Shown: positions 9,656 to 26,403 of the stretch, in pieces
Layout: every line of letters begins with the position of its first letter
Numbering within the stretch: the first letter of the stretch is position 1
Virus record (IMG/VR): IMGVR_UViG_3300032214_000715
Span: 62,001 to 126,000 of that record
Reading direction: 5' to 3' (one strand)
DNA length: 64,000 nucleotides
Made by a program: the position numbers and the translations under genes
Notes under the pieces: model-generated
What the model saw: the letters and a program-made list of their open reading frames with translations, nothing else
Database searches by the model: none
Told to the model about the DNA's origin: nothing

Positions 9656-9666
9656 AGGAAAATATC

Positions 9667-11719: not shown

Positions 11720-11727
11720 ATTTATTT

Positions 11728-12351: not shown

Positions 12352-12354
12352 TAT

Positions 12355-12558: not shown

Positions 12559-13049
12559 GAATCCCAACTCAATCTAGATGTTTTCATTGCCGGAGCGCCC
12601 GCGTATTTCTTAACAATTTCTTCTCCAGCATCTATAAATCTAAGCGCTCGTAGTCCAACTACATTATTGGTAGTGTCAATGACTTCCTCAGCATTGGGTC
12701 TTTCGCTGTGATTGGATAATAAGAATGAGCTGATATGTATCACTCCAGTACTCTCACTGTATCTCCATCTTTTTGTCTTAGCAAACACAGCAGCATCTTC
12801 TGGTGATAATTTATATTCTATTCTACCAATTGGTATGACATGCTGATTATTGATCCAACGAAGACCCATCATTTTTACGAACCTAGTGTTCTTAATTATC
12901 TGCCAGTCTTCATCATCTATTTTTACAACTGGATCTAGAACAATTAATTCTCCATTCTGAATTGGAACAGAAGCAAATAATCCATTGCCCGCACTCTTAA
13001 TTCGTGACTTGGCCATATAACTCTTTGATGTTACTTCATTAATACGCAT
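12555..13049 (-). CDS. SET-domain protein
   Basis: GNGLFA, NHSERPN and ALRFIDAGEEI...Y motifs. Confidence 0.8.
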   Translation of the reverse strand: MRINEVTSKSYMAKSRIKSAGNGLFASVPIQNGELIVLDPVVKIDDEDWQIIKNTRFVKMMGLRWINNQHVIPIGRIEYKLSPEDAAVFAKTKRWRYSESTGVIHISSFLLSNHSERPNAEEVIDTTNNVVGLRALRFIDAGEEIVKKYAGAPAMKTSRLSWDS

Positions 13050-13075
13050 ATATGTATTTATGTTAGAAATAAACT

Positions 13076-13149
13076 TGGTGCTCCTAGCAAGAATCGAACT
13101 TGCGATTCGGCTTTACCAAAGCCGTAGTATGCCATTTACTTATAGGAGC
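13076..13149 (-). tRNA. tRNA-Thr(GGT)
   Basis: Cloverleaf with CCA. Confidence 0.93.
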
Positions 13150-13151
13150 AG

Positions 13152-13241
13152 TGGCGGGCAAGGTGGGATTCGAACCCACGGAAGAGTTTCCCCTTCGCCA
13201 GTTTTCAAGACTGGAGCCATAATCCACTCGGCCACCTGCCC
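13152..13241 (-). tRNA. tRNA-Ser(TGA)
   Basis: Type II cloverleaf with CCA. Confidence 0.93.
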
Positions 13242-13295
13242 ATATTCTTTAACACACTATTTATCACATTGTACACCGTGTGTTATGGTGAAGTT

Positions 13296-13369
13296 TGGCG
13301 TCCCTCCAGGGAGTCAAACCCCGGCCCTCAGTTTTGGAGACTGATGTGCTATCGTAACACTTGAGAGAC
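13296..13369 (-). tRNA. tRNA-Trp(CCA)
   Basis: Cloverleaf with CCA. Confidence 0.9.
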
Positions 13370-13376
13370 AATAATT

Positions 13377-13466
13377 TGGCGGAGTGACTGGGACTTGAAC
13401 CCAGAAGCCTGCTTTCGCAAACCGACGGATTAGCAATCCGCTCCAATACCATTATGGGACCACTCC
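13377..13466 (-). tRNA. tRNA-Ser(GCT)
   Basis: Type II cloverleaf with CCA. Confidence 0.93.
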
Positions 13467-13471
13467 AATTT

Positions 13472-13556
13472 TGGTGCCCCAGGTCGGACTCGAACCGACA
13501 CGCCTTTCGGCAATGGCTTCTAAGACCATCGTGGCTACCAGTTACACCACCGGGGC
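13472..13556 (-). tRNA. tRNA-Leu(TAG)
   Basis: Type II cloverleaf with CCA. Confidence 0.93.
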
Positions 13557-13567
13557 AATTTAAATTT

Positions 13568-13645
13568 TGGCAGGGGATCCAGGATTTGAACCTGGGAATG
13601 TCGGAATCAAAATCCGATGCCTTAGACCAACTTGGCTAATCCCCT
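13568..13645 (-). tRNA. tRNA-Gln(TTG)
   Basis: Cloverleaf with CCA; 5' end overlapped by the HNH ORF. Confidence 0.92.
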
Positions 13646-14086
13646 TTTGTTGTATTTTCCTCTTTTTTTACCGGATAAAGATGTTGAAATATTCTTTTTG
13701 TGTTCTTCTGATTTTGGTTTTGTGGATCCTTTATTCTTTTTCCCATTTTCAGATAACATATTTTTAGTCTGTTCTTCTCCGTATTTAAGAACAGATCGCT
13801 CGTATGGAGAAAGATGTGTTCCACGGTCTACTTGATCTAAGTGATTATCTTTATATGATCCCCAATAGATATGATTTGGATTTGAACATTTAGGATTATT
13901 ACAGGCATGACACACGATAGCATTGTCTCCCTTTTTAGGGATAGATGTATTAAGAGTGAATGCCAAAAGCCCAGTTAAATGATAAGAATATTTCAATCCT
14001 CTTTCGTCACATTTTTCATATAGTTTAATATGCGTCATTCTTTCATCTTTTGAACTAAACATATATTCTTTAATATCAATTGGCAT
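13622..14086 (-). CDS. HNH-type (zinc-binding loop) homing endonuclease with NUMOD3-like tail
   Basis: VCHACNNPKCSNPNH...N and KSEEHKKNIS; start at MPID after AAGGA RBS. Confidence 0.8.
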   Translation of the reverse strand: MPIDIKEYMFSSKDERMTHIKLYEKCDERGLKYSYHLTGLLAFTLNTSIPKKGDNAIVCHACNNPKCSNPNHIYWGSYKDNHLDQVDRGTHLSPYERSVLKYGEEQTKNMLSENGKKNKGSTKPKSEEHKKNISTSLSGKKRGKYNKRGLAKLV

Positions 14087-14125
14087 AATAATTCCTTTGT
14101 TTTTATTATTTAGTAAAACAACATA

Positions 14126-14158
14126 AATTCTATGCTCTCCCAATTGAGCTAACCCCCA
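14126..14158 (-). pseudogene. Orphan tRNA 5' half
   Basis: TGGGGGTTAGCTCAATTGGGAGAGCA gives acceptor strand plus D-arm, then breaks off before the HNH gene. Confidence 0.65.
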
Positions 14159-14168
14159 TCTGAATAAA

Positions 14169-14230
14169 ACAGGATGCTTTTTACGTTTCAAATTAAAAGT
14201 TTGATGTATAAAGTTTGCTGTACGCATCCT
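14169..14230 (-). ncRNA. Mini-RNA carrying a Lys(TTT)-like anticodon stem-loop
   Basis: AGGATGC/GCATCCT closing stem, TACAGCAAA, TCAAA-CTTTTAA-TTTGA. Confidence 0.55.
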
Positions 14231-14236
14231 AAAATC

Positions 14237-14331
14237 TGGACCGTCGGACAGGATTCGAACCTGCATCAGTATACAGTGATACCACTCCAGTTACCTTTGT
14301 CCGCGTTCGTAGCGCGAGGGGATACCGACGG
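14237..14331 (-). tRNA. Non-canonical tRNA-Arg(ACG) with rewired D-arm
   Basis: 7-bp acceptor, anticodon arm, T-arm and CCA present; only 7 nt where the D-arm belongs. Confidence 0.7.
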
Positions 14332-14341
14332 ATTGTATTCT

Positions 14342-14417
14342 TGGTGCCGCCTCTAGGGATTGAACCTAGTTCTCTGGTGCTTCAAACCAGCGTGAGGACC
14401 ACCTTCACCAAAGCGGC
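14342..14417 (-). tRNA. tRNA-Phe(GAA)
   Basis: Cloverleaf with CCA. Confidence 0.92.
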
Positions 14418-14429
14418 TAAAACTTCTTA

Positions 14430-14504
14430 GGGGTGACCAACGGAATTCGAATCCGTACTATCACGGTCACAGCATGAGGTGCTAACCATTACACTATGGT
14501 CACT
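14430..14504 (-). tRNA. tRNA-His(GTG)
   Basis: Cloverleaf with C discriminator; CCA not fully encoded; -1 base is A. Confidence 0.88.
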
Positions 14505-14519
14505 CCTAAGCAGTCTTTT

Positions 14520-14594
14520 TGGTGGAGGATACCGGGGTCGAACCGGTGACTATGCCTTGCAAGGGCATCGTGTTCCCAACTATACCAATCCCCC
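14520..14594 (-). tRNA. tRNA-Ala(TGC)
   Basis: Cloverleaf, G3.U70, CCA. Confidence 0.94.
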
Positions 14595-14603
14595 AATAAA
14601 ACA

Positions 14604-14661
14604 ACAGGATCCTTATTTTTTCAATTACAAGTTGAATTTTAAAATTTGCTGTAAGGATCCT
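14604..14661 (-). ncRNA. Mini-RNA carrying a Thr(TGT)-like anticodon stem-loop
   Basis: AGGATCCTTA/TAAGGATCCT stem, CAGCAAA, TTCAA-CTTGTAA-TTGAA. Confidence 0.55.
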
Positions 14662-14668
14662 AAAACTT

Positions 14669-14745
14669 TGGCGCACCGTAGGGGACTTGAACCCCTGGCC
14701 TCGGCAGTGACAGTGCCGCGATCTAACCAACTGATCTAACGGTGC
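14669..14745 (-). tRNA. tRNA-Asp(GTC)
   Basis: Cloverleaf with CCA. Confidence 0.94.
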
Positions 14746-14752
14746 GGAAATT

Positions 14753-15029
14753 TGGTGGGACCAGGGGGGTTCGAACCCCCGACCAACGGATTAACCTACC
14801 ACTATAGTTTTCACTACCAGTTTCCTGTTTGTGGTCTGGACTATACCTTCATCGTATCATTTCTGACTTAGATGCCCGCCGTCTAGTCTCTACACGTTCC
14901 CATTACTGGGCTTCGCTCGGTATCGCCATTTTACAGGGTTCACCGAATTTGACGGGTTCTACTTACAAAATTTCTTTTGTAGCACTCCTATTTTAAAGTC
15001 CGCTGCTCTACCGACTGAGCTATAGTCCC
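14753..15029 (-). tRNA. tRNA-Lys(TTT), intron-containing
   Basis: Exons 15029-14996 and 14794-14753 rebuild GCGGA-CTTTTAA-TCCGT. Confidence 0.88.
14795..14995 (-). mobile_element. Group I intron (about 201 nt, no ORF) in the tRNA-Lys anticodon
   Basis: AAATTCGGTGAA, GTAGAGACTAGACGG and AAGGTATAGTCC core elements; terminal G. Confidence 0.88.
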
Positions 15030-15088
15030 TTTATCAATCAACAGAACACAGTGTACTCGTTAGGGTAATTACTGTCAACAACTATCGG

Positions 15089-15164
15089 TGGTCTCCGTGC
15101 CCGGATTTGAACCGGGACCGCTCCGCCCCAAACGGAGTATGCAACCAGGTAACACTTCACAGAG
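15089..15164 (-). tRNA. tRNA-Pro(TGG)
   Basis: Cloverleaf with CCA. Confidence 0.92.
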
Positions 15165-15300
15165 ATAAAATTTCTTTTATTTTACACATTATGTATAAAT
15201 AAACGGTGAATCATAAGATTGTTTGATTAGGGCCAAACAATCAACCACACGAGGAGTGATGGCTGTCTGATTCGCAAGTATTTATAACGAGGAGAATCAA

Positions 15301-16182
15301 ATGAAATATAAATCACCACTGTGTTCATGCATAGTATGTCATGAAACAAAATCAGCAAAAGGCATATTTACCCATTATATAGTAAGTCACACTGAAGAAG
15401 GGTCAAACAGATTACAGCGTGGACAAAAAAATGGCGTCGAAAATGCAAAAAAATCAAACAATAAAAATTTCACTGAGAGAATTAAAAAATATGATCAGTC
15501 TCCAAAACAATGTATAAATTGCAACAAAAAATTAGATTATGACAAAAAATTTAGTAAATTTTGCAATCACTCTTGCTCCGCGTCTTACAACAATAATTTG
15601 CGCAGTGCCGATACAATTAGAAAACAAGGTAATTCTCTGAAAGAAACTCTTAAAAATATTTTTGAGTCAATCTCTAAAATAAAATTTAAAACTTGTACTT
15701 ATTGTTATAAAAATTACACATGGCACAAAGGAATGTCATTTAAATTTTGCTGTATAATCTGCAAAGAAAAGGAACAATTCCATAGATTATCTACTCTTGC
15801 AAAAGATCGTGGTCTTGGAGGGGTCAGACCGTCTAAACGAATACTGTACAAAGGAGTATTGCTTGGGTCCACATATGAAGTTAAATTGGCAGAATCACTT
15901 GATGATAATTGCATCAAATGGATAAAGCCAGCACGATTGAACTACGTGGATCCATTCGGAAAAGAGCGCACCTATGAAGCAGATTTTTATCTGCCAGAAT
16001 ATAATGTTTATCTTGACCCTAAAAATGACTTTTTAATTAATAATATTAATCCAAGATTAGGTTTTAAAGATTCAGAAAAAATTCATTTAGTATGTAAACA
16101 AAATGATGTTCAAATTTTCATACTTGATAAAACGCAATTAACATGGCAGCATGTTAAAAACATTATTGATGGTTCCTCGTGA
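15301..16182 (+). CDS. Zn-finger plus PD-(D/E)XK putative homing endonuclease
   Basis: Several CxxC pairs; STYE...YEADFYLPEYNVYLDPK; TATAAATA at about 15195. Confidence 0.7.
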   Translation: MKYKSPLCSCIVCHETKSAKGIFTHYIVSHTEEGSNRLQRGQKNGVENAKKSNNKNFTERIKKYDQSPKQCINCNKKLDYDKKFSKFCNHSCSASYNNNLRSADTIRKQGNSLKETLKNIFESISKIKFKTCTYCYKNYTWHKGMSFKFCCIICKEKEQFHRLSTLAKDRGLGGVRPSKRILYKGVLLGSTYEVKLAESLDDNCIKWIKPARLNYVDPFGKERTYEADFYLPEYNVYLDPKNDFLINNINPRLGFKDSEKIHLVCKQNDVQIFILDKTQLTWQHVKNIIDGSS

Positions 16183-16243
16183 AGGAATCGAACCTCCGTC
16201 TGTAGAATGTAAATCTACGGCCCTACCATTAGACGAACGAGGA
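16170..16243 (-). tRNA. tRNA-Val(TAC)
   Basis: Cloverleaf with CCA. Confidence 0.88.
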
Positions 16244-16266
16244 AAATTAAAAAAATAAGTATAACA

Positions 16267-16354
16267 GGGTTGCGGAACCTGGATTCGAACCAGAACTTGC
16301 ATTAGATGTCTCAGGGTTATGAGCCCCGCGTTTTGCCAATTAAACTATTCCGCT
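16267..16354 (-). tRNA. tRNA-Met(CAT), initiator-like, with long variable region
   Basis: 1:72 mismatch and GGG/CCC anticodon stem; about 17-nt variable loop. Confidence 0.8.
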
Positions 16355-16363
16355 GTATTCTAT

Positions 16364-16723
16364 TTATAAACCTAACGTCTTGTAACCATATTTCTTTGCT
16401 ACTTTGACAGAAACGCCAAGCGCAGCAGCACATGGAAACCGAACATGTTTCTTGAACCGATATCCATTTAAGGTGAATGGTTTCAACACTGTGTCACAAT
16501 TCCAACAATTTCGTTGACAACTGATGTAACCAAGTTCTTCTAACTGATTACGCAACTTAGCGAACTCATCGTGATCTTTATTGCTATGTGTAATCATTTT
16601 ATGGTGACCACTGAGAATTTTAATCAAATCATCTGGTGTAGGGTTCTCACGATCAGACAACAATGTATATTCTGTCGTGACATGTACATCAGTTAGGTAT
16701 TGTTCATCAATAGTGAAATCCAT
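16364..16723 (-). CDS. Hypothetical protein
   Basis: GAGGT RBS before MDFT. Confidence 0.7.
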   Translation of the reverse strand: MDFTIDEQYLTDVHVTTEYTLLSDRENPTPDDLIKILSGHHKMITHSNKDHDEFAKLRNQLEELGYISCQRNCWNCDTVLKPFTLNGYRFKKHVRFPCAAALGVSVKVAKKYGYKTLGL

Positions 16724-16846
16724 AATTACCTCTAAAAATATTTCTGTATACACCTGCTGACATGGGCACTAAGGTTAATAGTTTGTGCCTAGATTTTTTA
16801 CAGCCGATGAATCATTGTCACGACATAGCTAATAGCGACAACTTTA

Positions 16847-16886
16847 CCTGACGATTTTATAAATATCCTGACGATTTTATAAATAT
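16847..16886. repeat. 20-bp perfect tandem duplication
   Basis: cctgacgattttataaatat x2. Confidence 0.9.
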
Positions 16887-16971
16887 AAAATCAGCATCTA
16901 ACTCATGTGTCTTACCACACTATATATTAAATAATATTTTAACACATCAGCATGTGTATACAGAAACAAAA

Positions 16972-17058
16972 TGGAGTGCCGAGAGGGATTTGAACCCCCG
17001 ATGTCCTTTCGGATAGGGATTTGCAATCCCTCACATTCGACCGCTCTGTCATCGGCAC
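16972..17058 (-). tRNA. tRNA-Cys(GCA) with long variable arm
   Basis: Cloverleaf, U73, TCC-GAAA-GGA extra arm. Confidence 0.88.
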
Positions 17059-17134
17059 ATCGTATTCTTAAGGGGCACAGTGTCTGTCGTTTAAGAGTAG
17101 GCATCCTTCAGCCACTCCCCCAGATAAATCTATT

Positions 17135-17212
17135 TGGTGGTGATGGTTGGAATTGAACCAACCCCATTCTTCCTTATGAGGGAAGCGTACAGACCATCTA
17201 TACTACATCACC
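17135..17212 (-). tRNA. tRNA-Met(CAT)
   Basis: Cloverleaf with CCA. Confidence 0.88.
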
Positions 17213-17219
17213 TATTATT

Positions 17220-17296
17220 TGGTACCCACGGTTGGATTTGAACCAACGACTTTCGCCTTATCAAGACGCTACTCTGACCAACTGAGTTACGCGGGT
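17220..17296 (-). tRNA. tRNA-Ile(GAT)
   Basis: Cloverleaf with CCA. Confidence 0.9.
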
Positions 17297-17370
17297 ATAT
17301 AACCATATTTGAACACACTCAGGAGGTCAAATTCCTTTTACCAACCAGTTATGGTGAATGTGTTCAAATA

Positions 17371-17469
17371 TAGCGACCCTTTGTGGGCAGGATTCGAACC
17401 TGCAAGTGGCTTCTATTTCCACTGGCCCTATTAGAGGCCTATGTTTACCATATTCCATCACCACGGGTC
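17371..17469 (-). ncRNA. tRNA-like RNA (type II body, bulged 9-bp acceptor, abnormal anticodon loop)
   Basis: D-arm, long variable arm and perfect GCAGG-TTCGAAT-CCTGC T-arm. Confidence 0.6.
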
Positions 17470-17812
17470 ATCGGAGTCATGACTTCCGATTATGATCGAG
17501 GTTAATTACTCCTCTCTGTTAGACGCAATTTGAGTACAACTCAAGCGGCTCTTTCTAACATTTACCATAGTTCAGCACACTCAAACGGGTCTTTTCGCCA
17601 TTTCTCTTCCATGCCGTTCCACGTGAGAATGGGTAGAATGCGCTGAACTATGGTTAGTACGAGACACGATGAGCAATCCCAACTCCTCATGACCAATCGG
17701 TCACTTAGGTTAAACCTCATGCCACTTATGTACTACCATATTTGAACACACTCGCTCCCGCAATTAGACGGTTGCATTAACATCAAAAGGATGTGACGAA
17801 TGTGCTCAAATA

Positions 17813-17891
17813 TGGTACCCAGTATGGAATCGAACCGATTTCTCCAGCCGCACTTAAGAGGGTGGCGTCTTAACCAATAGACGAACTGAGT
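17813..17891 (-). ncRNA. tRNA-like RNA with distorted anticodon arm (CTCTTAA loop)
   Basis: Acceptor, D-arm, T-loop and CCA present; anticodon and T stems are bulged. Confidence 0.55.
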
Positions 17892-17981
17892 ATAACCATA
17901 TTTGAACACACTACCCAGCGTATCTAGAAAACTGTTTGTACATTAGCAATGTGCTCAAATATGGTGAAACTACGTTTTCAA

Positions 17982-18191
17982 TTACATCAACCAAATGCCG
18001 TCATAATAATATTGCCAGTGATAAGAAACACTACCAGTATCCCATTTAACCATAATTTCGTTATCATCACGGCGGCTGGCTTGTTCTATTGGAATAAGTT
18101 TATATATCATTCCCTCATTACCAGTATAAGAAGATTTTACTCTATCTCCGATTCTGAGAGACTGAAATGGAACATTCGATAGTTTTTGCAT
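17982..18191 (-). CDS. Hypothetical protein
   Basis: AGGAGG RBS. Confidence 0.7.
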   Translation of the reverse strand: MQKLSNVPFQSLRIGDRVKSSYTGNEGMIYKLIPIEQASRRDDNEIMVKWDTGSVSYHWQYYYDGIWLM

Positions 18192-18833
18192 TATGGCCTC
18201 CTATGCCATATTAAGATCCATTAAAAAATCCAAACAGTAAAATCTTTTGTGATTACTCTCCTACTATATTTGAAGATACTAGTAGACTTGCGGTCGCTTC
18301 ATCGGTGTCGTTGTGCGTCCCACTCGCATCCATTTTGTCGCTCTTTCGAGAACACCAAAACTAATACCTTCAAATATAGGCCCCACCGTTAACTGGTCAT
18401 ATCCCTAGAGTTACTTTTAGAAGGATTGTAGCACGGTGGGCACACCTGTCCTTCTCTACACTGTGTTTACTACTATTGCCTGCCCTAGGGATTAGGTACC
18501 TACCCTAGCGACTCATAGTGGATTTGTAGATAATCCGCTGCTCTTGCTAGTTTACACCATATTTTAGCAGACACGGGCCGATTCCTTATCCGTGTTTATT
18601 CTTCCCTGTGCTGGCCAGTCGGGTCGAGGCAAACTGCTAAAATATGGTGACCTGTGTTCGTATGCGGTATTGATTGACATACGGGAAAGGTCAGCGTTCC
18701 CTCTATCGGCCCTGATTTTACAGCTAGCGCGAAATTGGCGTCGGTGGTCCTAGACCTGAAGTGGTGCGGGGTCATTTCGCACGATTGCCACAAGGCTTTC
18801 GCCATCTTTCACTTACCGACATTGAATTATCAC

Positions 18834-19232
18834 TTATGATAGAAGTAATTTTTTTGATCCTTGCAGGAAATTCTGCAATTCTTTGTTTGTGCAAGCAATA
18901 GGCAAAGGAACTTTTCTCTTAACCTGCTGAACATATTTACTATCTTTGTTATTGGCATACCAATCTAGATTATCTTCCTGCATAGCAAACAAGACTGAAA
19001 TAAAACGATCTTCTTCGCCAGAATTGCTACCCACTAGTTTATATCCAACACCTAAGTTTTTTGGATGAAATTTATCCACCCATGATAAAAATTCGTTTGT
19101 TGTTATTCCTTGTGGGAAGAGATCCAAATTAGCCACACATCGCATGACATAATTTCCATACTGATCGGATTTAATCAGTTTTTTAGTTCCAACTGGAATG
19201 AGATGATCTTTTGATAAATTGAATTGTGTCAT
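18834..19232 (-). CDS. Hypothetical protein
   Basis: AAAGGT RBS before MTQF. Confidence 0.7.
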   Translation of the reverse strand: MTQFNLSKDHLIPVGTKKLIKSDQYGNYVMRCVANLDLFPQGITTNEFLSWVDKFHPKNLGVGYKLVGSNSGEEDRFISVLFAMQEDNLDWYANNKDSKYVQQVKRKVPLPIACTNKELQNFLQGSKKLLLS

Positions 19233-19257
19233 ATTGACCTTTTTAAGATAACTTGTT

Positions 19258-19332
19258 TGGTAGACCACCACGGTATCGAACCATGTTCTGTAGAGTAAGA
19301 GTCTACTGCATCACCATTAATGCTTGTGATCT
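19258..19332 (-). tRNA. tRNA-Lys(CTT)
   Basis: Cloverleaf with CCA. Confidence 0.88.
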
Positions 19333-19338
19333 ATTGAT

Positions 19339-19423
19339 TGGTGGAGTGTACTGGGATCGAACCAGTCGTGCCCGAAGGCGGCGGATTTACAGTCCACTGC
19401 ATCACCATTGATGCTTCCACTCC
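19339..19423 (-). tRNA. tRNA-Tyr(GTA)
   Basis: Type II cloverleaf with CCA. Confidence 0.93.
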
Positions 19424-19935
19424 ATTATTCTTTACCATAGTTCAACACACTACCAGTCCCGGGGACTTGAACCCCTTTGCTCTAGATAGTTTCCTGACAT
19501 TTCGGTCTGGCAAGTAATATGCTGAACTATGGTGCCAATCATTTACATTGGCTTAGGGAATTTCGGTCCTCACGGGTGCTCCGCTACATACCACCCATCT
19601 ACCATACAAATTATCCGGTCTTTGTATGTAGACTTTTTACTCTCATTTACCATATTGAAACACACTACCGCAAACTTTCAATGCACGATGCAGTCTATGG
19701 CATCCGTAATGTGCTTCAATATGGCGGCAAGTTTCGTGATAGTTTGATGACGTTGTAGAGGTTCACTATGGCGTGAACTTACAGAGCGCAATAACTTCTC
19801 CCTATCAAAAACCCACTTGCCTATTACCATAGTTCAACACACTGATGAGAATCACACTCCCCTATTTCTCACAATAGGTTACGCCTAGGAGTCACACACA
19901 GATTCGGCTGTGCTGCGATACAATACGCTGAACTA

Positions 19936-20010
19936 TGGTACCCCTGAACGGTTACGATCCGTCTTCTCAGCCTTGAAAGGGCCGTGTTCTAGCCACTAAA
20001 CTACAGGGGC
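19936..20010 (-). tRNA. tRNA-Glu(TTC)
   Basis: Cloverleaf; CCA overlaps the start of a conserved hairpin. Confidence 0.9.
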
Positions 20011-20026
20011 AAATACTCTATGCTGA

Positions 20027-20057
20027 TTCTTAAAGAACTGTTGCTGAACTCTCAGCG
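20027..20057 (-). promoter_or_regulatory. boxB-like hairpin plus boxA-like antitermination motif
   Basis: GCTGA-GAGT-TCAGC then GTTCTTTAAGAA; also at 21727-21756 and 22060-22087, boxA alone at 22874-22885. Confidence 0.65.
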
Positions 20058-20118
20058 TATGAACATATTATATGCTAACGCTGATTTATTGTCAACAGTC
20101 TTTTGTCAATTTGTTGTT

Positions 20119-20439
20119 TGGTGCCCGGAGCCGGAATCGAACCGGCACGGCCGAAGCCGAGGGATTTTAAGCGTGTTGTCTCAAAGTTTCCAATGAGCAC
20201 GGACTATCTCTTTACCTTCAACATTACTTGTTAAGGCAGTGGGCGTTCTATGCTGGTTATTAAGAGGGCTTTACCTCTCCAGTAGTCTCTACACCTTCAC
20301 TGAATGTATTCAGTGCTTGGCTCGCGATTGCCATTTTACAGGCTCTCCCGAATTAACCCACAGTTTACTCACACATTTCTGTGTGAGGGGGACGGGCTTT
20401 CTGGTCCTCCCTTGTGTCTACCTATTTCACCATCCGGGC
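20119..20439 (-). tRNA. tRNA-Leu(TAA), intron-containing
   Basis: Exons 20439-20408 and 20171-20119 rebuild AGGGA-CTTAAAA-TCCCT. Confidence 0.88.
20172..20407 (-). mobile_element. Group I intron (about 236 nt) at tRNA position 31/32
   Basis: TTAATTCGGGAGA, GTAGAGACTA and AAGAGATAGTCC core elements; terminal G. Confidence 0.85.
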
Positions 20440-20520
20440 GTTTTGTTAACTTTCCATTAATTATGTTTGTAATTTTATAGACAATATAATACATTTTAAT
20501 AACATGGTTAATGAAGTTTG

Positions 20521-20594
20521 CTGGCCTGATTGGGATCGAACCAATGACCTAACGATTAACAGTCGTTTGCTACTACCGTCTGAGCTACAGGCCA
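20521..20594 (-). tRNA. tRNA-Asn(GTT), no encoded CCA
   Basis: Cloverleaf. Confidence 0.9.
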
Positions 20595-20611
20595 GCAAAC
20601 TTCACTAATTT

Positions 20612-20689
20612 TGGTGGGAGCGGTCGGACTCGAACCGACATCTGCGCGATTATGAGTCGCGAGTCATTAACCAATTAGACGACACTCCC
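20612..20689 (-). tRNA. tRNA(CAT), probably Ile2 (lysidine type)
   Basis: Cloverleaf with CCA; third CAT tRNA, identity inferred. Confidence 0.85.
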
Positions 20690-20735
20690 AATCTTTTATC
20701 TAACAAACAAAGTATAACTGTATTATTTACAGTTG

Positions 20736-21521
20736 TCAACTAGTTCTTAGAATTTTTTCTAGTTCATCAACAATCTTATTCAGATCATTTTCTACATTAT
20801 CGCTCCAAATGTATCTTATTTTAAATCCACACATTTGAGCAAGTTGTTCTTTCTTTCTATCCTTCTGCCAGATTTCTTCTCTAGTTCCCATAGATTTATA
20901 TGGTACCTTGAATTCTTCTGTTAAAGTCTTAGGATGATACGCTATTCCTTGATATTCAACAATGTATTTTATATCTAGAAACACCAAATCATAAAAAAAT
21001 ATTTGAGAATCATCCCTTAAAAAGTATTCTCTTCCATTTTTATGAAAGAAAACATTAGTGACTTTTGGAATCTGTTCTAGAAGACGCTCAATTACAACTT
21101 GACTTTCAACCGAGGCATATGAAGTCCTCGGATTTCTCAGATTTCCCTCGCGTATCAATTGTCGAGTGTGCGCGGAAACTTCTGGTTTGTCTAAGCCCAA
21201 TTCTGCTGCCTTTGAGAACTTATTACGCCCGATCCCTAATCCTTTTTTACCCTTCATTCCATAAGAAGGGTTCTTAGTCTTTTTTTCGGGATTTTTCTTA
21301 CATAATGATTCGTGCTGAGAAATGCTATTTGAATTTTTTCCTACGAAATCACAAAACTTACATTTGTATTCAGCAAGCTTAAACTGGTCTGCTTTTTCTC
21401 TAACTAGAGAAGAGAACAATTTTCCAGTTTTACATTGCTTGGATCCATAATGGATCTTTAGATTATTAGACGTTATCTCATTTTTACATGAGATACAAGA
21501 ACATAAATATTTTGCTACCAT
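20736..21521 (-). CDS. Vsr/EDxHD-like putative homing endonuclease with Zn fingers
   Basis: YDLVF...VEYQGIAYH...KDRKK...GFKIRYIW. Confidence 0.7.
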   Translation of the reverse strand: MVAKYLCSCISCKNEITSNNLKIHYGSKQCKTGKLFSSLVREKADQFKLAEYKCKFCDFVGKNSNSISQHESLCKKNPEKKTKNPSYGMKGKKGLGIGRNKFSKAAELGLDKPEVSAHTRQLIREGNLRNPRTSYASVESQVVIERLLEQIPKVTNVFFHKNGREYFLRDDSQIFFYDLVFLDIKYIVEYQGIAYHPKTLTEEFKVPYKSMGTREEIWQKDRKKEQLAQMCGFKIRYIWSDNVENDLNKIVDELEKILRTS

Positions 21522-22137
21522 ACATCTATTTATGCTTTGACCTATTGTTCTATGTTTTTACTATATTTGAACACACTGCCAGTCCCGGGGACTTGAACCC
21601 CTTTGCTCTTGATAGTTTCCCGACATTTCGGTCCGGCAAGCAATGCGCTCAAATATAGTATCACGCTACGTCAACAGTGCTAGTATTTAGCACCTCAGTT
21701 GGCGTGATACAAAAACTCTATGCTAATTTTTAAAGATCATCGCTGATTTCTCAGCGTTGAAGACAGTATATCAGAGTTCTGATTTATTGTCAAGAAACTG
21801 CCAGGTAGCTTAATGTGTGATTTCCACTACCCTGTTACTCTGTATCAGTCTAGATTGCTCTAGCATCAACCTGCGTCACACTGTGTGCAGACAGTATCAT
21901 AACTATATCAGGACTCCCATTTATTGTCAACAACTCTCAATGATTAGATCGAAATGCACTCGCATCTGCTTTTTGAGCCGCGTGTTCTACACCCTTGATT
22001 CCTAGACTAGTACTAGAGGCGTGTGCCCATTTACACTAGCACTTCGATCTAATCACTGATTGTTAAAGAACTTGTTGATTTCTCAACTGTTAGAGACAGT
22101 ATATCAGGGTTCTGATTTATTGTCAAATTTTTGGTTA

Positions 22138-22470
22138 TCACTCCGTAGGCACAATACCAACTGCGCCACCGTGCGCCTCAATGTATGCCTCTACCAGTTC
22201 AACTGGAACATATGCAAACACGGTTTGGCTATCATCAATCGAGTCGCCACCCTCTTTGTACTCGGCCGCCTCAGGCCAAGGTGCAGACGGAAAGCCAACC
22301 TCTACAGCAGTGTAGGGACCCTCACTATCGCGTGGAGTGCAATAATGCCCCGCACTCGCCTGTACCGACAGTGTAGTACCGTCAGTGCACACAATGCCTG
22401 GGCGAACTCTTACCATGAGTCCTTCATGCGCTTCATGCGTAACCGTAGGCAGTACCAATTTGTAGCTCAT
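22138..22470 (-). CDS. Hypothetical early protein
   Basis: Own promoter 22500-22528 and RBS. Confidence 0.75.
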   Translation of the reverse strand: MSYKLVLPTVTHEAHEGLMVRVRPGIVCTDGTTLSVQASAGHYCTPRDSEGPYTAVEVGFPSAPWPEAAEYKEGGDSIDDSQTVFAYVPVELVEAYIEAHGGAVGIVPTE

Positions 22471-22710
22471 TTCTTGTTCCTTTTTTCTAACTTGAATACA
22501 GTATATCAGTTACCTGATTTATTGTCAACTGTTATCTGTAGTGTGCTTATCAGCCCATCCTGTTAATTCAAGCTATACACCCTTACCAGATGTTCACACC
22601 GTTACATGCGGGGGTTATTTCCCCTATCGTATGCCCCCGTAACGAGAGGCATATGGGCTGATAAACACACTATAGATATCTGTAATGCGTTTTAGGCTGA
22701 AGACTTCATA

Positions 22711-22780
22711 AACTCTAGAGGGATTCGAACCCTCGTCACCGACCGATGGGCCAGTGTCTTATCCGCTAGACGATAGAGAC
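22711..22780 (-). pseudogene. tRNA-like element with short anticodon loop and no CCA
   Basis: D-arm and GAGGG-TTCGAAT-CCCTC T-arm, inside long hairpin 22678-22874. Confidence 0.6.
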
Positions 22781-23108
22781 TCCCTCCTTTTTCGCTCGGC
22801 AAAGCTACTCTGATCGGGGTGAAGTAACAGACCTTCTGACGATTGCCGCCATCAGCCTAAAACACACTACAGATTGTTAAAGAACTGGACAGTTTACGCT
22901 ACTGTCAAACGAAGACCTGTAGGCTATCAGGCTGCCACGCTGATGTTAACACCGATCAACGGGATTGTGCTTCCCGAAACTTCTAGACAGTGACGGTGGG
23001 AGTTTGTTGTCCCGCTTATGTCAACAGTCTCAGAGACCCTGTTTTTTGATCAGTTCTTCAGCGTATGAATACATTATAGTTGAAGACACATTTATTGTCA
23101 AATTTTGG

Positions 23109-23339
23109 TCAATCAACTCCGAAATGTTGCTTGATTTTATCTGCATTAGTGCCACCGATCTGAAGTTGGTATTCAGCATAGTCGGCACATTTCCGAACAG
23201 TGTCTTCTATAAGCAACTCGGCGAACTTTTTTCGGTCAAATACTGTCCGGATAGTGCTCAATCCACCAGCATTCATATCAAAGTCGCAAGGCACCTTTAC
23301 CCAGCATTGATCTTCAAGTTCAAGAATTCGTTCGTTCAT
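23109..23339 (-). CDS. MNERI-family small protein, copy 3
   Basis: MNERI...KFAELL...HFGVD. Confidence 0.75.
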   Translation of the reverse strand: MNERILELEDQCWVKVPCDFDMNAGGLSTIRTVFDRKKFAELLIEDTVRKCADYAEYQLQIGGTNADKIKQHFGVD

Positions 23340-23644
23340 TTTTGTGTATCTAGATAAAAAGTGGCCACACGCAACATCGCCATTGCCTGTTCACGGTTTG
23401 TGGGGAGAGGAACCTGATCTTGTTCGATAGTTTGTTCTTCAACTCCGAAATGTTGTTCGATCCGCATAGCAATGATTAGACCAGGACCGCCAAGTTTAGA
23501 ACCATCATATTCTTGGGCAATGGACATACATTCCGCCACAATCAACTCGGCGAACTTTTCTAAATCTTGCTCAATACCAAATCGTACCATTGATACCGCA
23601 TCAAAACCAGCCTGTAGAGCAAGGTCTTTAATTCGTTCGTTCAT
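23336..23644 (-). CDS. MNERI-family small protein, copy 2
   Basis: MNERI...KFAELIVAEC...HFGVEE. Confidence 0.75.
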   Translation of the reverse strand: MNERIKDLALQAGFDAVSMVRFGIEQDLEKFAELIVAECMSIAQEYDGSKLGGPGLIIAMRIEQHFGVEEQTIEQDQVPLPTNREQAMAMLRVATFYLDTQK

Positions 23645-23895
23645 TCTTCAACTCCGTTTTTCATAAAGTCGTGTGCCCAGTCTTGAGTGTAGTCGCAGAA
23701 TGGACAGATCCATCCACGAACAGTGGGAACCAATACGCCACGATCACCAGCGACAACGGGATGATCACTACGGTTAGCACGACAAGTAAAAGGGTGCATT
23801 CTGTGTGGTAATGTAGAGTCAGTGTCGCCAAATTTTCGCCACGGTCCAAACTGATGCTGCCATAGTTTCTCTACTTCTTGTGGAGTAAAAGTCAT
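23641..23895 (-). CDS. Hypothetical Zn-binding protein
   Basis: HPFTC...WICPFC; ends GVEE. Confidence 0.7.
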   Translation of the reverse strand: MTFTPQEVEKLWQHQFGPWRKFGDTDSTLPHRMHPFTCRANRSDHPVVAGDRGVLVPTVRGWICPFCDYTQDWAHDFMKNGVEE

Positions 23896-24149
23896 TCTTC
23901 AACTCCGAAATGTCGTTTGATCTTATTTCCAACATATATCAATGCCTCGTTGAAGCCTTCATAATACTCACTTTTGGTATTGGCATATCGGCTATTCACA
24001 GATAACTCCGCACACTCTTCCACAATGAGTTCGGCAAACTTTTTTACAAACTTTTCACTATTGACTGACAATGCGATATTTGACACTGGATGCCGTGTAG
24101 TAGCATATTCATTAGCCTGTTGGGCAAGTTCAAAGATTCGTTCGTTCAT
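23892..24149 (-). CDS. MNERI-family small protein, copy 1
   Basis: MNERI...KFAELIVEEC...HFGVEE. Confidence 0.75.
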   Translation of the reverse strand: MNERIFELAQQANEYATTRHPVSNIALSVNSEKFVKKFAELIVEECAELSVNSRYANTKSEYYEGFNEALIYVGNKIKRHFGVEE

Positions 24150-24186
24150 TTTGATAGTCCTTCCGCCACACCTTGCTCATCTAGTT

Positions 24187-24402
24187 TCAAAGTTTCAAGT
24201 TTAATTGTTTCTGTGCTTTCTTTAGCGTTGATGCAGGAACATCGGTACCTACCTCATTCCAGTGTGTTGAAACATGATAAGTTCCATCGGAATTCTTTCT
24301 GTCTACTTTAACCGTTTTATTATGAAAAATATGACGAGGATTAGGATGCGTCACTACTACCCTATCACCTGGGCGATACTGGACACGAAAATCATCCATC
24401 AT
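24187..24402 (-). CDS. Hypothetical SH3/KOW-like protein
   Basis: YRPGDRVVV; ATGA-coupled start. Confidence 0.6.
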   Translation of the reverse strand: MMDDFRVQYRPGDRVVVTHPNPRHIFHNKTVKVDRKNSDGTYHVSTHWNEVGTDVPASTLKKAQKQLNLKL

Positions 24403-24593
24403 TCTTCTGACTCCCAAACAATTTCATCAGTCTCACCAAGCGGCTCGACACGAACAATCTTGGCACCGTAAATCAGGTTCTTGTTCCAGTAATTGGTCAC
24501 AGACTTCTTGACGCCGGAAACAGAATCATGACCGTAAGTGGTCCAAGACTCTACCTTACCTTCAAAGAGTGCAGTGACATGGTATGCTTTCAT
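24399..24593 (-). CDS. Hypothetical early protein
   Basis: Own promoter and AGGAG RBS. Confidence 0.7.
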   Translation of the reverse strand: MKAYHVTALFEGKVESWTTYGHDSVSGVKKSVTNYWNKNLIYGAKIVRVEPLGETDEIVWESEE

Positions 24594-24658
24594 TTCGCTT
24601 GCTCCTGTTTTCTAACTTGAATACAGTATAACAGATACCCGATTTATTGTCAAATTTG

Positions 24659-24687
24659 TGGCACCCCGGAGAGGATTCGAACCTCCA
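24659..24687 (-). pseudogene. 3' half of a split non-canonical tRNA-Arg(TCT)
   Basis: GGAGG-TTCGAAT-CCTCT-CCGGGGT-G-CCA. Confidence 0.75.
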
Positions 24688-24721
24688 TTGAGATAAATAA
24701 AATATCACGGAGAATAAATCA

Positions 24722-25318
24722 ATGTTTCACTATGTCTATAGAATTACTAATATAAAAAACAATAAACACTATTATGGCAAAAGATCATCTAAAGTTACTC
24801 CATTTGAAGATTTAGGCAAAAAATATTTCAGTTCCTGTAAAGATAAGTTATTTATTAATGAGCAAAAAAAATTTCCCCAAAATTTCAAATATAAAGTAAT
24901 AAGATGCTTCAATAGCTCAACTAGTGCTATAAATTTTGAAATAAAATTACACAATAAATTTCAAGTAGATATCTCACCTCATTTTTATAATAGGGCAAAA
25001 CAAACATCTAATAAATTTCAGACATCTTACGTTTCTATCGATACTAGAAAAAAATTATCAGATGCGACCAGAAAGACTAATATAGGTGCTATAACGTCTA
25101 AAAAAAGAGCGGAATCTAATAGAAAAAATGGAGACGTTAAATGGCAAAAATATATAGAAATAGTAAACGCTTCCACTATTGATTTTACCAAATATGGGTG
25201 GGCTAAATTATTGGCCGACCTACTAGGAATATCTCATCAACAATCGTCCAAATGGCTCAAAAGGCATTGCCCTGAAATTTATTCAACGTGTTTCAAACGA
25301 AAAAATGGTCCCGCGTAG
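24722..25318 (+). CDS. GIY-YIG homing endonuclease (Seg-like)
   Basis: HYVYRITNIKNNKHYYGKR...YFSS...E...FYN. Confidence 0.88.
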   Translation: MFHYVYRITNIKNNKHYYGKRSSKVTPFEDLGKKYFSSCKDKLFINEQKKFPQNFKYKVIRCFNSSTSAINFEIKLHNKFQVDISPHFYNRAKQTSNKFQTSYVSIDTRKKLSDATRKTNIGAITSKKRAESNRKNGDVKWQKYIEIVNASTIDFTKYGWAKLLADLLGISHQQSSKWLKRHCPEIYSTCFKRKNGPA

Positions 25319-25380
25319 TTGAATCGAACAACTATTCCAAATTTAGAAGATTTGTATATTTTCCATTATATGAACGCGAG
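25306..25380 (-). tRNA. tRNA-Arg(TCT), canonical, nested
   Basis: Cloverleaf with CCA. Confidence 0.88.
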
Positions 25381-25388
25381 AAATTCTT

Positions 25389-25439
25389 ATCACTCCAATT
25401 ACACTGCTACGCTTTAGAAGAGCGTTGTGGTACCGAGGT
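25389..25439 (-). pseudogene. 5' half of a split non-canonical tRNA-Arg(TCT)
   Basis: ACCTCGG-TACCACA-ACGCT-CTTCTAA-AGCGT-AGCAGTGTAATTGGAG. Confidence 0.75.
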
Positions 25440-25492
25440 ATAGATTCAAAGTATATCTGGTGTTTGATTATTTGTCAAGTGTTTGTGTTGAT

Positions 25493-25575
25493 TGGTGCTG
25501 AAGGTGAGACTCGAACTCACGTAGGTTTCCCGACGGCTTACAAAACCGTTGCAATTGCCGCTATGCGACTCCAGC
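25493..25575 (-). tRNA. tRNA-Thr(TGT) with long variable arm
   Basis: Cloverleaf, GG-GAAA-CC extra arm, CCA. Confidence 0.88.
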
Positions 25576-25799
25576 GTTACTATCTTTATTTAGTCTCTAT
25601 TATAGGCGCAATAATTTTTTTGTCAAACACTGTGTTGTCCGAAACTGCTTTAGTGTCATGATCGTCAATAAAGACGGCTCCGATATTGTTGACACAATTT
25701 GTTCCATTCATTAATTACGCGTTCGTTTATCGTACATGAGATTTCCCAATTACTCATTTTTAATCCTTTCAGTTGATAAATATATTTAAGGAGAATAGT

Positions 25800-25913
25800 A
25801 TGTTAGAAACATTATTATATCTATTGATTGGCGCATTCATTGGTTGGAATATTCCTCAACCAGAATTTGCTAAAAATTTACAAGCAAAAGTTATAGCATT
25901 ATTCAAAAAATAA
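25800..25913 (+). CDS. Small membrane protein (37 aa)
   Basis: MLETLLYLLIGAFIGWNIPQP...; ATAAATA and AAGGAG RBS. Confidence 0.65.
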   Translation: MLETLLYLLIGAFIGWNIPQPEFAKNLQAKVIALFKK

Positions 25914-26104
25914 CACACTCAACATTAAGTGTGTATATTAAAGAGCACTAGTTAATGCTCTTTAATATAGTATGCCCGTCGCATACATGTCTATTGAACT
26001 GCGTAGTTATAAATAACCAACACGGTTCTCCAGAACCCCCCGTTTTAATTAAGCAGATTAAGGCTGCCGACGCCCGGGTACGCCACACACTTTACTACAT
26101 AAAC

Positions 26105-26135
26105 AAAAAACCCTAGAATTTTTGGTTCTAGGGTT
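26105..26135 (-). terminator. Intrinsic terminator of putative attenuator
   Basis: AACCCTAGAA-CCAAAAA-TTCTAGGGTT-TTTT. Confidence 0.8.
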
Positions 26136-26176
26136 CAAGTATTTGTGTAGTATTATCTAGTTCTATACTTGAACCC
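26131..26176 (-). promoter_or_regulatory. Antiterminator helix (12 bp), mutually exclusive with the terminator
   Basis: GGGTTCAAGTAT (26176-26165) pairs with ATACTTGAACCC (26142-26131). Confidence 0.7.
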
Positions 26177-26270
26177 CTGTTAGACCATCATTATAGGCAC
26201 GGCTAAAGCAGGGCATTGACCATAATGTCTGCTCTGCTTTATGTACAATAATGACTCTGAGTGAATTCAT
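26163..26270 (-). CDS. Putative leader peptide containing all 20 amino acids (35 aa)
   Basis: MNSLRVIIVHKAEQTLWSMPCFSRAYNDGLTGVQV; AAGAG RBS; ATAAATA at about 26291-26297. Confidence 0.7.
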   Translation of the reverse strand: MNSLRVIIVHKAEQTLWSMPCFSRAYNDGLTGVQV

Positions 26271-26403
26271 AGTATTTCTCTTTTGTAGTATATTTATCAG
26301 AACTTATTAAACTCGCTAGAAAATCGCAAAATTTTGATGTTTTTGTTTTTTGCTAGTGTTGTTGATTAACAGTTCACTAACTTTATTTAGTGTTAATAAA
26401 AAA

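Follow-up and report, generated by a model that had tools for sequence, protein, structure and literature searches.

A reading frame holding all 20 amino acids, with a predicted transcriptional switch, at the head of phage tRNA gene arrays

Why large phages carry near-complete sets of tRNA genes is still debated, with codon compensation, host tRNA decay, and escape from tRNA-cleaving defences all having been proposed, and how phages control their tRNA arrays is essentially unknown. The locus described here raises the question of whether a short ORF that contains every amino acid, and that ends inside a predicted antiterminator/terminator switch, might serve to couple slow translation of any codon to more transcription towards such an array. 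An earlier note, made from the sequence alone, had proposed that this ORF is the leader peptide of an attenuator that senses the general tRNA pool. The sequence observation is confirmed by our analysis of the window (i.e., the whole stretch of DNA analysed, 64,000 nucleotides in length), and the core of the interpretation is supported by comparative evidence, although the regulation itself is inferred from sequence. The features of the locus are the following.

26289 to 26300, minus strand: the CTGATAAATATA motif, a possible phage promoter element 19 nt upstream of the ATG.
26163 to 26270, minus strand: the leader ORF, 35 codons plus TAG, holding all 20 amino acids, with no canonical Shine-Dalgarno sequence.
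26184 to 26249, minus strand: codons 8-29, the shortest span (22 residues) that holds all 20 amino acids.
26187 to 26255, minus strand: a hairpin inside the ORF (codons 6-28), a possible pause or structural element.
26165 to 26176, minus strand: the 5' arm of the antiterminator, GGGTTCAAGTAT, covering codons 32-35 and the first base of the stop codon.
26131 to 26142, minus strand: the 3' arm of the antiterminator, ATACTTGAACCC, whose last 6 nt are also the start of the 5' arm of the terminator.
26101 to 26136, minus strand: an intrinsic terminator with an 11-bp stem, a 7-nt loop and a T tract.
25913 to 25986: three hairpins between the proposed attenuator and the convergent ORF, one of them terminator-like on the minus strand.
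25800 to 25913, plus strand: a convergent small ORF (37 codons from its ATG, with an AAGGAG Shine-Dalgarno sequence).
25599 to 25626, minus strand: a consensus sigma-70-type promoter (TTGACA-16-TATAAT, 12/12) directly upstream of tRNA-Thr.
11644 to 25575, minus strand: a tRNA array of about 29 genes covering all 20 amino acids.

The ORF begins with ATG, and all 20 amino acids are present by codon 29. The codon choices cited in the note as being spread across isoacceptors (Arg AGA/CGT, Ser TCA/AGC, Leu CTC/TTA/CTA, and Ala GCA/GCC) are correct. The 5' arm GGGTTCAAGTAT ends on the T of the TAG stop and pairs perfectly over 12 bp with ATACTTGAACCC, which shares GAACCC (26136-26131) with the 5' arm of the terminator stem-loop (26136-26108, 11 pairs), itself followed by a T tract to 26101. 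The duplex energy of the antiterminator is -20.8 kcal/mol, and that of the terminator is -13.4 kcal/mol. In the tRNA array, which lies on the same strand as the ORF, ARAGORN assigns 19 amino acids, while tRNA-Tyr(GTA) at 19342-19423 is found only by Rfam and brings the total to 20. Two tRNA-Leu(TAA) genes in the array carry group I introns. The sequence described in the note as a late-promoter-like ATAAATA is present (CTGATAAATATA), and the CTGATAAATATA motif has 4 matches at 1 mismatch or fewer in the window against 0.86 expected, 3 of them just upstream of ORF starts. However, in the related loci L002 and L003 the same bases lie in the spacer of a sigma-70-type TTGACA-17-TATAnT promoter, so that the promoter class is not established; its assignment as a late promoter remains conjecture. 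By our alignment the -35 and -10 hexamers of the window itself are degenerate (TTAATA and TACAAA).

The possibility that this is a chance ORF inside a structured non-coding RNA or a plain operon terminator was considered. A span of 22 residues or fewer holding all 20 amino acids arose in 1 of 300 Markov-2 random 64-kb sequences and in 1 of 1000 shuffles of the proteome of the window, and is therefore rare but not impossible for a single window. Within the six frames of the window, the next-shortest such span is 28 residues. Other spans of 28-29 residues occur at 23372, 19151, 52905 and 45715; the two that we located, at 23372 and 19151, lie inside longer ORFs of 102 and 145 residues. In addition, the 206-nt unit is strongly structured (-60.4 kcal/mol, z = -6.0) and there is no canonical Shine-Dalgarno sequence before the ATG, either here or in any subgroup. 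However, no Rfam family, including the Trp, His, Thr, Leu and Phe leaders and the T-box, matches this locus in the window or in 8 related loci at gathering thresholds. At E-values up to 1 on the related locus L042 (8250-9010), the only match is one far below the gathering score of its family (24.2 against 48.5 bits), to a plastid 3'-UTR family over the terminator region on the opposite strand.

Chance is removed as an explanation by the comparative data. About 100 homologous ORFs of 35-59 codons were found in IMG/VR phage contigs and in a library of 1.84 billion cluster representatives, the homologues in L002, L003 and L004 having 35-37 codons. Among the fetched loci, 93 of 99 instances and 62 of 67 unique peptides hold all 20 amino acids, as do 46 of the 58 hits (clusters at 50% identity) in the independent search of the protein library, whereas the random expectation is 0.14% at 35 residues, 1.5% at 45 and 7% at 58. 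These counts include related sequences and are not independent events. The property is specific to the reading frame, since across 82 unique family ORFs all 20 amino acids are present in frame 0 in 75, against 3-7 in each of the other five frames, which also carry stops. The frame and the coverage are kept despite identities down to about 15-30%; loss of either among homologues, which the note had named as grounds for rejecting its reading, was tested for and did not occur. A chance ORF is thus contradicted, and we regard this alternative as very unlikely.

Presence rather than position is selected. Cys averages 1.01 copies per peptide and is single in 71 of 74, yet it sits in 9 alignment columns; Trp is single in 70 of 74 and sits in 5 columns; and His is single in 66 of 74 and sits in 8 columns. 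Amino acids present in a single copy thus relocate rather than disappear. Moreover, both Arg codon boxes are used in 69 of 71 members (49 expected), both Leu boxes in 77 of 78 (53 expected), and both Ser boxes in 80 of 82 (72 expected), while distinct codons average 36.4 against 32.9 expected, with 79 of 82 members above expectation. The retention of every amino acid, with the rare ones present exactly once and their positions free to move, is unusual in its own right as evidence for selection on composition rather than on sequence. In contrast, the codons of the leader are no more often readable by the tRNAs of the window than are the codons of the phage genes (28 of 35 against 81%).

These observations bear on the alternative that the ORF is an ordinary small phage gene encoding a functional micropeptide with its own promoter and terminator, the amino acid content being a side effect of its sequence and the helix serving mRNA stability. 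Purifying selection acts on the frame (pN/pS of 0.40), conserved motifs exist (M-N-K-x-C, K-H, W, and S-I-R-G), and members are listed in public databases as 'hypothetical protein'. Both the pN/pS value and a nucleotide-conserved block (AGTATTCGCGG, encoding S-I-R-G) show constraints beyond mere composition. However, coverage is kept across clusters below 50% identity and across lengths of 35-59 residues, the single-copy residues move, synonymous codons are spread over both boxes, and the C-terminal conservation coincides with the RNA arm. Furthermore, no folded-protein signal was obtained (AlphaFold2 mean pLDDT 57.9, pTM 0.12, no secondary structure), and no Pfam or PHROG family matches. We therefore consider the micropeptide reading improbable.

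The anatomy of the switch is also conserved. Terminators lie 17-36 nt after the stop codon across the family and show compensatory changes, and in folds of the nascent RNA the 5' arm of the terminator pairs with the ORF tail. In all 79 family sequences examined this pairing is present (overlap 6-16 nt), with a mean duplex energy of -21.7 kcal/mol against -11.3 kcal/mol for shuffled tails. The 5' arm spans about -14 to +3 relative to the stop in the short forms and about -36 to -5 in the long forms, while the 3' arm always lies after the stop. There are 67 distinct arm pairs, examples being GGGTTCAGGTAA/TTACCTGAACCC in L004, GGGTTCACGG/CTGTGAACCC in L003, and CAGGGTTCTTAG/CTAAGAACCCTG in the family member L061. 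RNAalifold on full-length leaders returns only the terminator, so the antiterminator had to be tested with a named structure; on one alignment (A3), 83% of cells are paired against 34-68% when the partner is slid, 5 pairs have changes on both sides, and 0 of 500 shuffles reach the observed score. The set of 20 amino acids is complete before the arm starts in 68 of 69 members, a median of 3 codons before, although a ribosome stalled at these last amino acids would cover part of the arm. No anti-antiterminator was detected, as the best upstream partner of the 5' arm has -12.8 kcal/mol against -13.1 kcal/mol for shuffled upstream sequence, and the internal hairpin of the window does not involve the arm.

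All 52 of 52 distinct members with at least 1.5 kb of downstream sequence have a same-strand tRNA within 1.5 kb (median 538 nt) and none on the other strand, and 81 of 89 have a consensus promoter within 330 nt upstream. In L061 and in another member, L046, we found no other promoter of at least 10/12 and no other same-strand terminator before the first tRNA. However, in 41 of 52 members, and in this window, at least one consensus promoter lies between the terminator and the first tRNA, usually 80-95 nt after the stop, so that read-through can then only supplement tRNA transcription and not gate it. The placement at the head of the array is true by position, but in this window the read-through path also contains the convergent ORF and the hairpins (minus strand 25934-25913 with a T run; plus strand 25970-25986), and tRNA-Arg, like tRNA-Thr, has its own strong promoter (11/12, at 25478-25450). 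The convergent ORF has a weak PHROG match and is conserved in L003 on the opposite strand to the leader, and the AAAGAGCA...TGCTCTTT hairpin is conserved in L002 and L003.

Given this arrangement, the unit might be a sensor whose output is not read-through into the tRNAs. In one version the completed peptide, which can only be made when all 20 aminoacyl-tRNAs are available, would act as a checkpoint signal; in another the released leader RNA of about 170-200 nt would act in trans, as rnTrpL does in Sinorhizobium (PMC6614838), with the alternative helices tuning how much of either is made. The strong and often tandem upstream promoters, the dedicated terminator, and the new promoter just after it in 41 of 52 members make the unit look self-contained, and the obstacles in the read-through path of the window together with the S-I-R-G block and the pN/pS value are compatible with this view. 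However, it does not explain why the helix competing with the terminator is kept and covaries in every lineage, why the set of 20 is completed just before the arm, or why the unit always sits on the same strand directly upstream of tRNA arrays, and no fold is predicted for the peptide. We consider it possible but unlikely.

The explanation that we favour, with reasonable but not strong confidence and without any expression, ribosome-profiling or termination data, is a ribosome-mediated transcription attenuator whose leader ORF is a pangram, containing every amino acid, most of the rare ones exactly once, and spreading the six-codon amino acids over both codon boxes. Transcription would start upstream of the ORF, from strong sigma-70-type promoters in most relatives and from a weaker or phage-specific promoter in this window. 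Pairing of the last codons with the segment that contains the 5' half of the terminator stem would prevent termination. A ribosome that translates the ORF without delay would cover the arm in time, the terminator would form, and the leader RNA would be released. If the ribosome is held up at any codon upstream of the arm by a scarce, uncharged or cleaved tRNA of any specificity, or never starts, the antiterminator would form and polymerase would read through towards the tRNA array. In the absence of an anti-antiterminator, loss of translation should raise read-through rather than abolish it, and a start-codon mutant is predicted to be constitutively ON. That termination is modulated by ribosome position, the sign of the response, and the tRNAs as the regulated output are all inferred, single codons give less leverage than the codon runs of classical attenuators, and the link to anticodon nucleases suggested in the note remains conjecture.

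Compared with the leader-peptide attenuators of enterobacterial amino-acid operons (trpL, hisL, pheL, thrL, leuL, and the multivalent ilvL), the element shares a short ORF in a leader followed by an intrinsic terminator, an alternative helix sharing bases with the 5' arm of the terminator, and an ORF end overlapping the upstream arm. The classical leaders, however, carry runs of one to three amino acids, possess an anti-antiterminator (1:2 pairing) that gives termination when translation is absent, and control biosynthetic enzymes in cells, whereas here no codon run exists, the predicted default state is read-through, and tRNA genes in a phage follow. T-box riboswitches report, as is proposed here, on tRNA aminoacylation through an antiterminator/terminator choice and control genes of the translation apparatus, but a T-box binds one specific uncharged tRNA directly, without translation, and senses one amino acid per element, while here the proposed readout is through the ribosome and covers all amino acids. 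In pyrBI (pyrL) and similar coupling-dependent attenuators the outcome depends, as is proposed here, on how closely the ribosome follows RNA polymerase; in pyrL, however, the closely following ribosome prevents the terminator hairpin and the signal is UTP-dependent pausing of the polymerase, whereas here the stop codon precedes the terminator stem by 17-36 nt, so the ribosome would act on the antiterminator and should favour termination. Phage tRNA arrays have been studied as a counter to tRNA-targeting defences and host tRNA loss (PMC10264068; PMC11464382), but those studies concern the tRNAs themselves; PMC10264068 does not mention leaders, attenuators, promoters or terminators, and no prior description of a control element of this sort turned up in our searches. 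We think it somewhat more likely than not that a class of huge phages carries a universal translation-capacity sensor of this kind, turning a shortage of any single aminoacyl-tRNA, whether from starvation, codon mismatch or tRNA-cleaving defence, into increased transcription of the phage's own tRNA array. If so, it would be the first leader-peptide attenuator known to sense all 20 amino acids and the first known to control tRNA genes, extending attenuation from metabolic operons to the translation apparatus itself and giving the debate on phage tRNAs a testable mechanism of supply on demand. Because the element is short and uses sigma-70-type promoters and an intrinsic terminator, it may work in E. 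coli, which would also make it a candidate general reporter of translation stress, codon by codon.

The family is so far metagenomic only. Megablast and blastn of the locus, and blastn of a leader from the larger subgroup, against 50,697 phage records found no homologue. In the tRNA region (40 kb) of Vibrio phage 2.275.O no comparable short ORF was found, the few ORFs there with all 20 amino acids being 56-65 residues long and, by their coordinates, mostly lying inside annotated genes; the element is therefore not universal among tRNA-rich phages. A metagenome scan with the terminator pattern returned 120 mostly chance hits and only two copies identical to L002, while the viral scan with the same pattern added only the contig of the window; the subgroup of the window still has just 4 distinct sequences.

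The element is more conserved than its neighbour, with 83, 75 and 72% nucleotide identity where the adjacent endolysin protein is 61, 47 and 56% identical. The G+C-rich segment just after the terminator (26100-25995), and its counterpart in L003, does not fold better than shuffles. The hairpin inside the ORF has a predicted energy of -25.6 kcal/mol (RNAfold) and is seen only in the subgroup of the window, no counterpart being predicted in the larger subgroup; its inner helix is 85% paired with 3 compensatory pairs across 4 sequences, whereas the outer helix is poorly kept.

On the minus strand of the window there is an ATG-initiated ORF of 35 codons which uses all 20 amino acids by codon 29. 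The synonymous codons cited in the earlier note as examples of spread across isoacceptors are correct, i.e., Arg AGA/CGT, Ser TCA/AGC, Leu CTC/TTA/CTA, and Ala GCA/GCC. The ORF, its associated structures, and the downstream tRNA array are arranged on this strand as follows.

26270-26163, minus strand: leader ORF of 35 codons
26249-26184, minus strand: codons 8-29 of the ORF, which alone already hold all 20 amino acids
26176-26165, minus strand: last codons of the ORF, GGGTTCAAGTAT, ending on the first base of the TAG and forming the 5' arm of the antiterminator
26142-26131, minus strand: segment ATACTTGAACCC, which pairs perfectly with the 5' arm
26136-26108, minus strand: stem-loop of an intrinsic terminator, with a T tract to 26101
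25575-11644, minus strand: tRNA array
19342-19423, minus strand: tRNA with a long variable arm, whose anticodon loop reads GTA (Tyr)

The last six bases of the 26142-26131 segment are also the first six of the 5' arm of the terminator. The antiterminator duplex is calculated at -20.8 kcal/mol and the terminator at -13.4 kcal/mol, while the whole 206-nt unit folds far better than shuffled sequences (-60.4 kcal/mol, z = -6.0). In the tRNA array, ARAGORN assigns 19 amino acids, and the tRNA at 19342-19423, which was missed by ARAGORN on the whole window, was found by Rfam; thus all 20 amino acids are covered. Two further tRNA-like genes (17379-17467 and 22709-22781) have odd anticodon loops and no assignment. 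Other features of the array were also evident.

9385-9708, minus strand: permuted (two-piece) tmRNA gene at the far end of the array (Rfam RF04321, 82.7 bits; also matched by the alpha-tmRNA model)
14753-15029 and 20119-20439, minus strand: two tRNA-Leu(TAA) genes, each interrupted in the anticodon loop by a group I intron of 199 and 236 nt (ARAGORN with introns; Rfam RF00028)
24722-25318, plus strand: homing-endonuclease-like ORF (PHROG 314, E = 2e-21) inside the array, ending within tRNA-Arg 25306-25380

When judged from the window alone, a span of 22 residues or fewer holding all 20 amino acids appeared in 1 of 300 Markov-2 random 64-kb sequences analyzed in six frames, and in 1 of 1000 shuffles of the proteome of the window. 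The next-best span in the real window is 28 residues. This is rare, but a large scan would meet such a span now and then, and we therefore turned to relatives.

The phage has no close relative among 50,697 phage records. The neighbouring cell-wall hydrolase (26988-26404) was used to fetch 80 IMG/VR loci. The leader region is conserved in three of these loci, L002, L004, and L003, at 83, 75, and 72% nucleotide identity, respectively, while the hydrolase protein is only 61, 47, and 56% identical. The corresponding ORFs have 35, 36, and 37 codons, and each holds all 20 amino acids; when Cys, Phe or Asp is lost at one position it reappears at another. L002 and L003 also carry group I introns in their tRNA arrays. 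A blind scan of every ORF of 20-45 codons in the 80 loci (15,700 start/stop combinations) found 23 with all 20 amino acids, including recognisably related ORFs of 43-45 codons in loci L014, L042, L046, and L065. A profile search then added loci L049 and L056, and reading upstream of the tRNA array in locus L061 added a 59-codon member. All seven of the 80 loci that contain a tRNA array have such an ORF just upstream on the same strand. Furthermore, a 15-nt motif that precedes the ATG in this larger subgroup retrieved 120 more viral loci, about 95 of which carry a homologous ORF. The subgroup of the window has only four distinct sequences.

In the fetched loci, 93 of 99 instances and 62 of 67 unique peptides hold all 20 amino acids, and the rest hold 19. 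In an independent sample, a profile of 56 members was searched against 1.84 billion cluster representatives at 50% identity and gave 58 hits, of which 46 hold all 20; one hit is a spurious repeat protein and one is a fragment. Random peptides with the amino-acid composition of the phage reach 20 with a probability of 0.0014 at 35 residues, 0.015 at 45, and 0.07 at 58. The property belongs to one frame only, as it is found in 75 of 82 unique ORFs in frame 0, against 3-7 of 82 in each of the other five frames, which also carry stops. Rare residues are present almost exactly once but not at fixed sites. Cys averages 1.01 copies, is single in 71 of 74 peptides, and occupies 9 alignment columns, while Trp is single in 70 and occupies 5 columns, and His is single in 66 and occupies 8 columns. 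Although these counts, like those on codon choice below, include related sequences and are not independent events, the relocations, together with the retention across clusters below 50% identity, are not explained by descent alone.

Codon choice points the same way. Both codon boxes are used for Arg in 69 of 71 members (49 expected), for Leu in 77 of 78 (53 expected), and for Ser in 80 of 82 (72 expected), and the ORFs use 36.4 distinct codons against 32.9 expected. The pN/pS ratio is 0.40, and the frame is therefore under selection, although perhaps less tightly than might be anticipated for typical proteins. AlphaFold2 with the family alignment gives no fold (pLDDT 57.9, pTM 0.12). Moreover, no Pfam or PHROG family matches, and the members are listed in databases as hypothetical proteins.

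Nearly every member has a strong terminator 17-36 nt after the stop codon, and when the nascent RNA is folded without the 3' arm of the terminator, the 5' arm pairs with the ORF tail. Across 79 distinct sequences there are 67 different arm pairs, with a mean duplex energy of -21.7 kcal/mol, against -11.3 kcal/mol for shuffled tails and -8.7 kcal/mol for the ORF head. The duplex overlaps the 5' arm of the terminator by 6-16 nt. Compensatory changes are plain, for example AAGTAT/ATACTT, AGGTAA/TTACCT, and CACGG/CTGTG in the subgroup of the window. On a 28-sequence alignment, the named helix has 83% of cells paired, against 34-68% when the partner is slid; five pairs changed on both sides, and 0 of 500 shuffles reach the observed score. 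There are two layouts, in that the stop codon lies inside the 5' arm in the short forms, while in the long forms the arm lies 5-7 codons before the stop. In 68 of 69 members the set of 20 amino acids is complete before the arm begins, a median of three codons earlier. We were unable to find any upstream partner for the 5' arm better than chance (-12.8 against -13.1 kcal/mol). Thus, there is no detectable anti-antiterminator, and an untranslated leader should read through.

Of 52 distinct members with at least 1.5 kb downstream, all have a same-strand tRNA within 1.5 kb (median 538 nt, range 223-1436) and none has one on the other strand. Based on consensus matches only, 81 of 89 have a promoter matching at least 10 of 12 positions within 330 nt upstream, often two or three in tandem about 100 nt apart. 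In loci L096, L157, and L061, two or three such near-consensus TTGACA-17-TAnAAT promoters, up to 420 nt upstream of the leader ATG, feed the leader. However, 41 of 52 members also have a consensus promoter between the stop and the first tRNA, usually just past the terminator, while 11 have none. L061 and L046 show a clear path of promoters, leader, terminator, and tRNAs, with no other consensus promoter and no other same-strand terminator. In the window itself the path is not clear, since the following features lie in the way, and tRNA-Thr and tRNA-Arg each have a near-consensus promoter of their own.

25800-25913, plus strand: small hydrophobic ORF convergent to the leader, with a good Shine-Dalgarno sequence (AAGGAG), conserved in L003
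25913-25986: three hairpins, one of them terminator-like on the minus strand

The upstream promoter of the window is degenerate by sigma-70 rules. It keeps a TGATAAATATA motif that recurs four times in the window against 0.86 expected, and a motif of the same type precedes the convergent ORF. A similar xTAAATA element lies upstream of the ATG in all subgroups, and this motif may or may not represent a phage-specific (late-type) promoter.

In the proposed mechanism, a ribosome that runs the ORF without delay would cover the 5' arm while the polymerase makes the terminator, and transcription would stop. A ribosome held at any earlier codon, or absent, would leave the arm free, so that the antiterminator forms and the polymerase continues towards the tRNA genes. 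Because every amino acid and both boxes of the six-codon amino acids are sampled upstream of the arm, a shortage of any aminoacyl-tRNA could be registered. The effect would be a boost on top of constitutive promoters in most members. While the anatomy, conservation, covariation, frame-specific selection, and synteny rest on the sequences, the response itself, its sign, and its target are inferred without experimental evidence, and we consider this mechanism more likely than not. The main alternative keeps the sensor but places the output elsewhere, in the finished peptide or the released leader RNA. It fits the self-contained look of the unit but not the conserved competition between the helices.

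As proposed, the element would work like the leader-peptide attenuators of amino-acid operons, and it has their structural characteristics. It differs from them in two defining respects, as there are no runs of regulatory codons and no detectable anti-antiterminator, and it matches no Rfam leader or T-box model. We therefore regard it as a variant of these attenuators and not as a member of any named family. In the literature searched, in which absence is not proof of novelty, including one paper on phage tRNAs, we found no description of an all-amino-acid leader or of any attenuator in front of phage tRNA genes.

In the larger subgroup, a conserved structured RNA containing GGGCGGACAG lies between the attenuator and the first tRNA (L042 8757-8926, L061 9152-9321, and 43 other distinct sequences), and 12 of 19 predicted pairs show compensatory changes. 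No credible Rfam match was found in L042 8250-9010, which contains it, and it is absent from the window. It would be the first RNA made on read-through. A conserved ORF of about 51 codons (motif D-W ... K-E-Q-V-x-Q-L-I) lies directly after the promoter that follows the terminator in L331 (4259-4414), L042 (about 8630-8780), and L096, with no obvious ATG in some members. One family member, L330 (CANEUJ010000032.1), is present with its tRNA array on a 13.5-kb contig binned in a Neisseriaceae MAG, which is a possible but weak hint about the host. In L003, the first tRNA-like gene after the leader (7240-7326) scores as tRNA-Sec in Rfam, just at threshold (47.3 against 47 bits).
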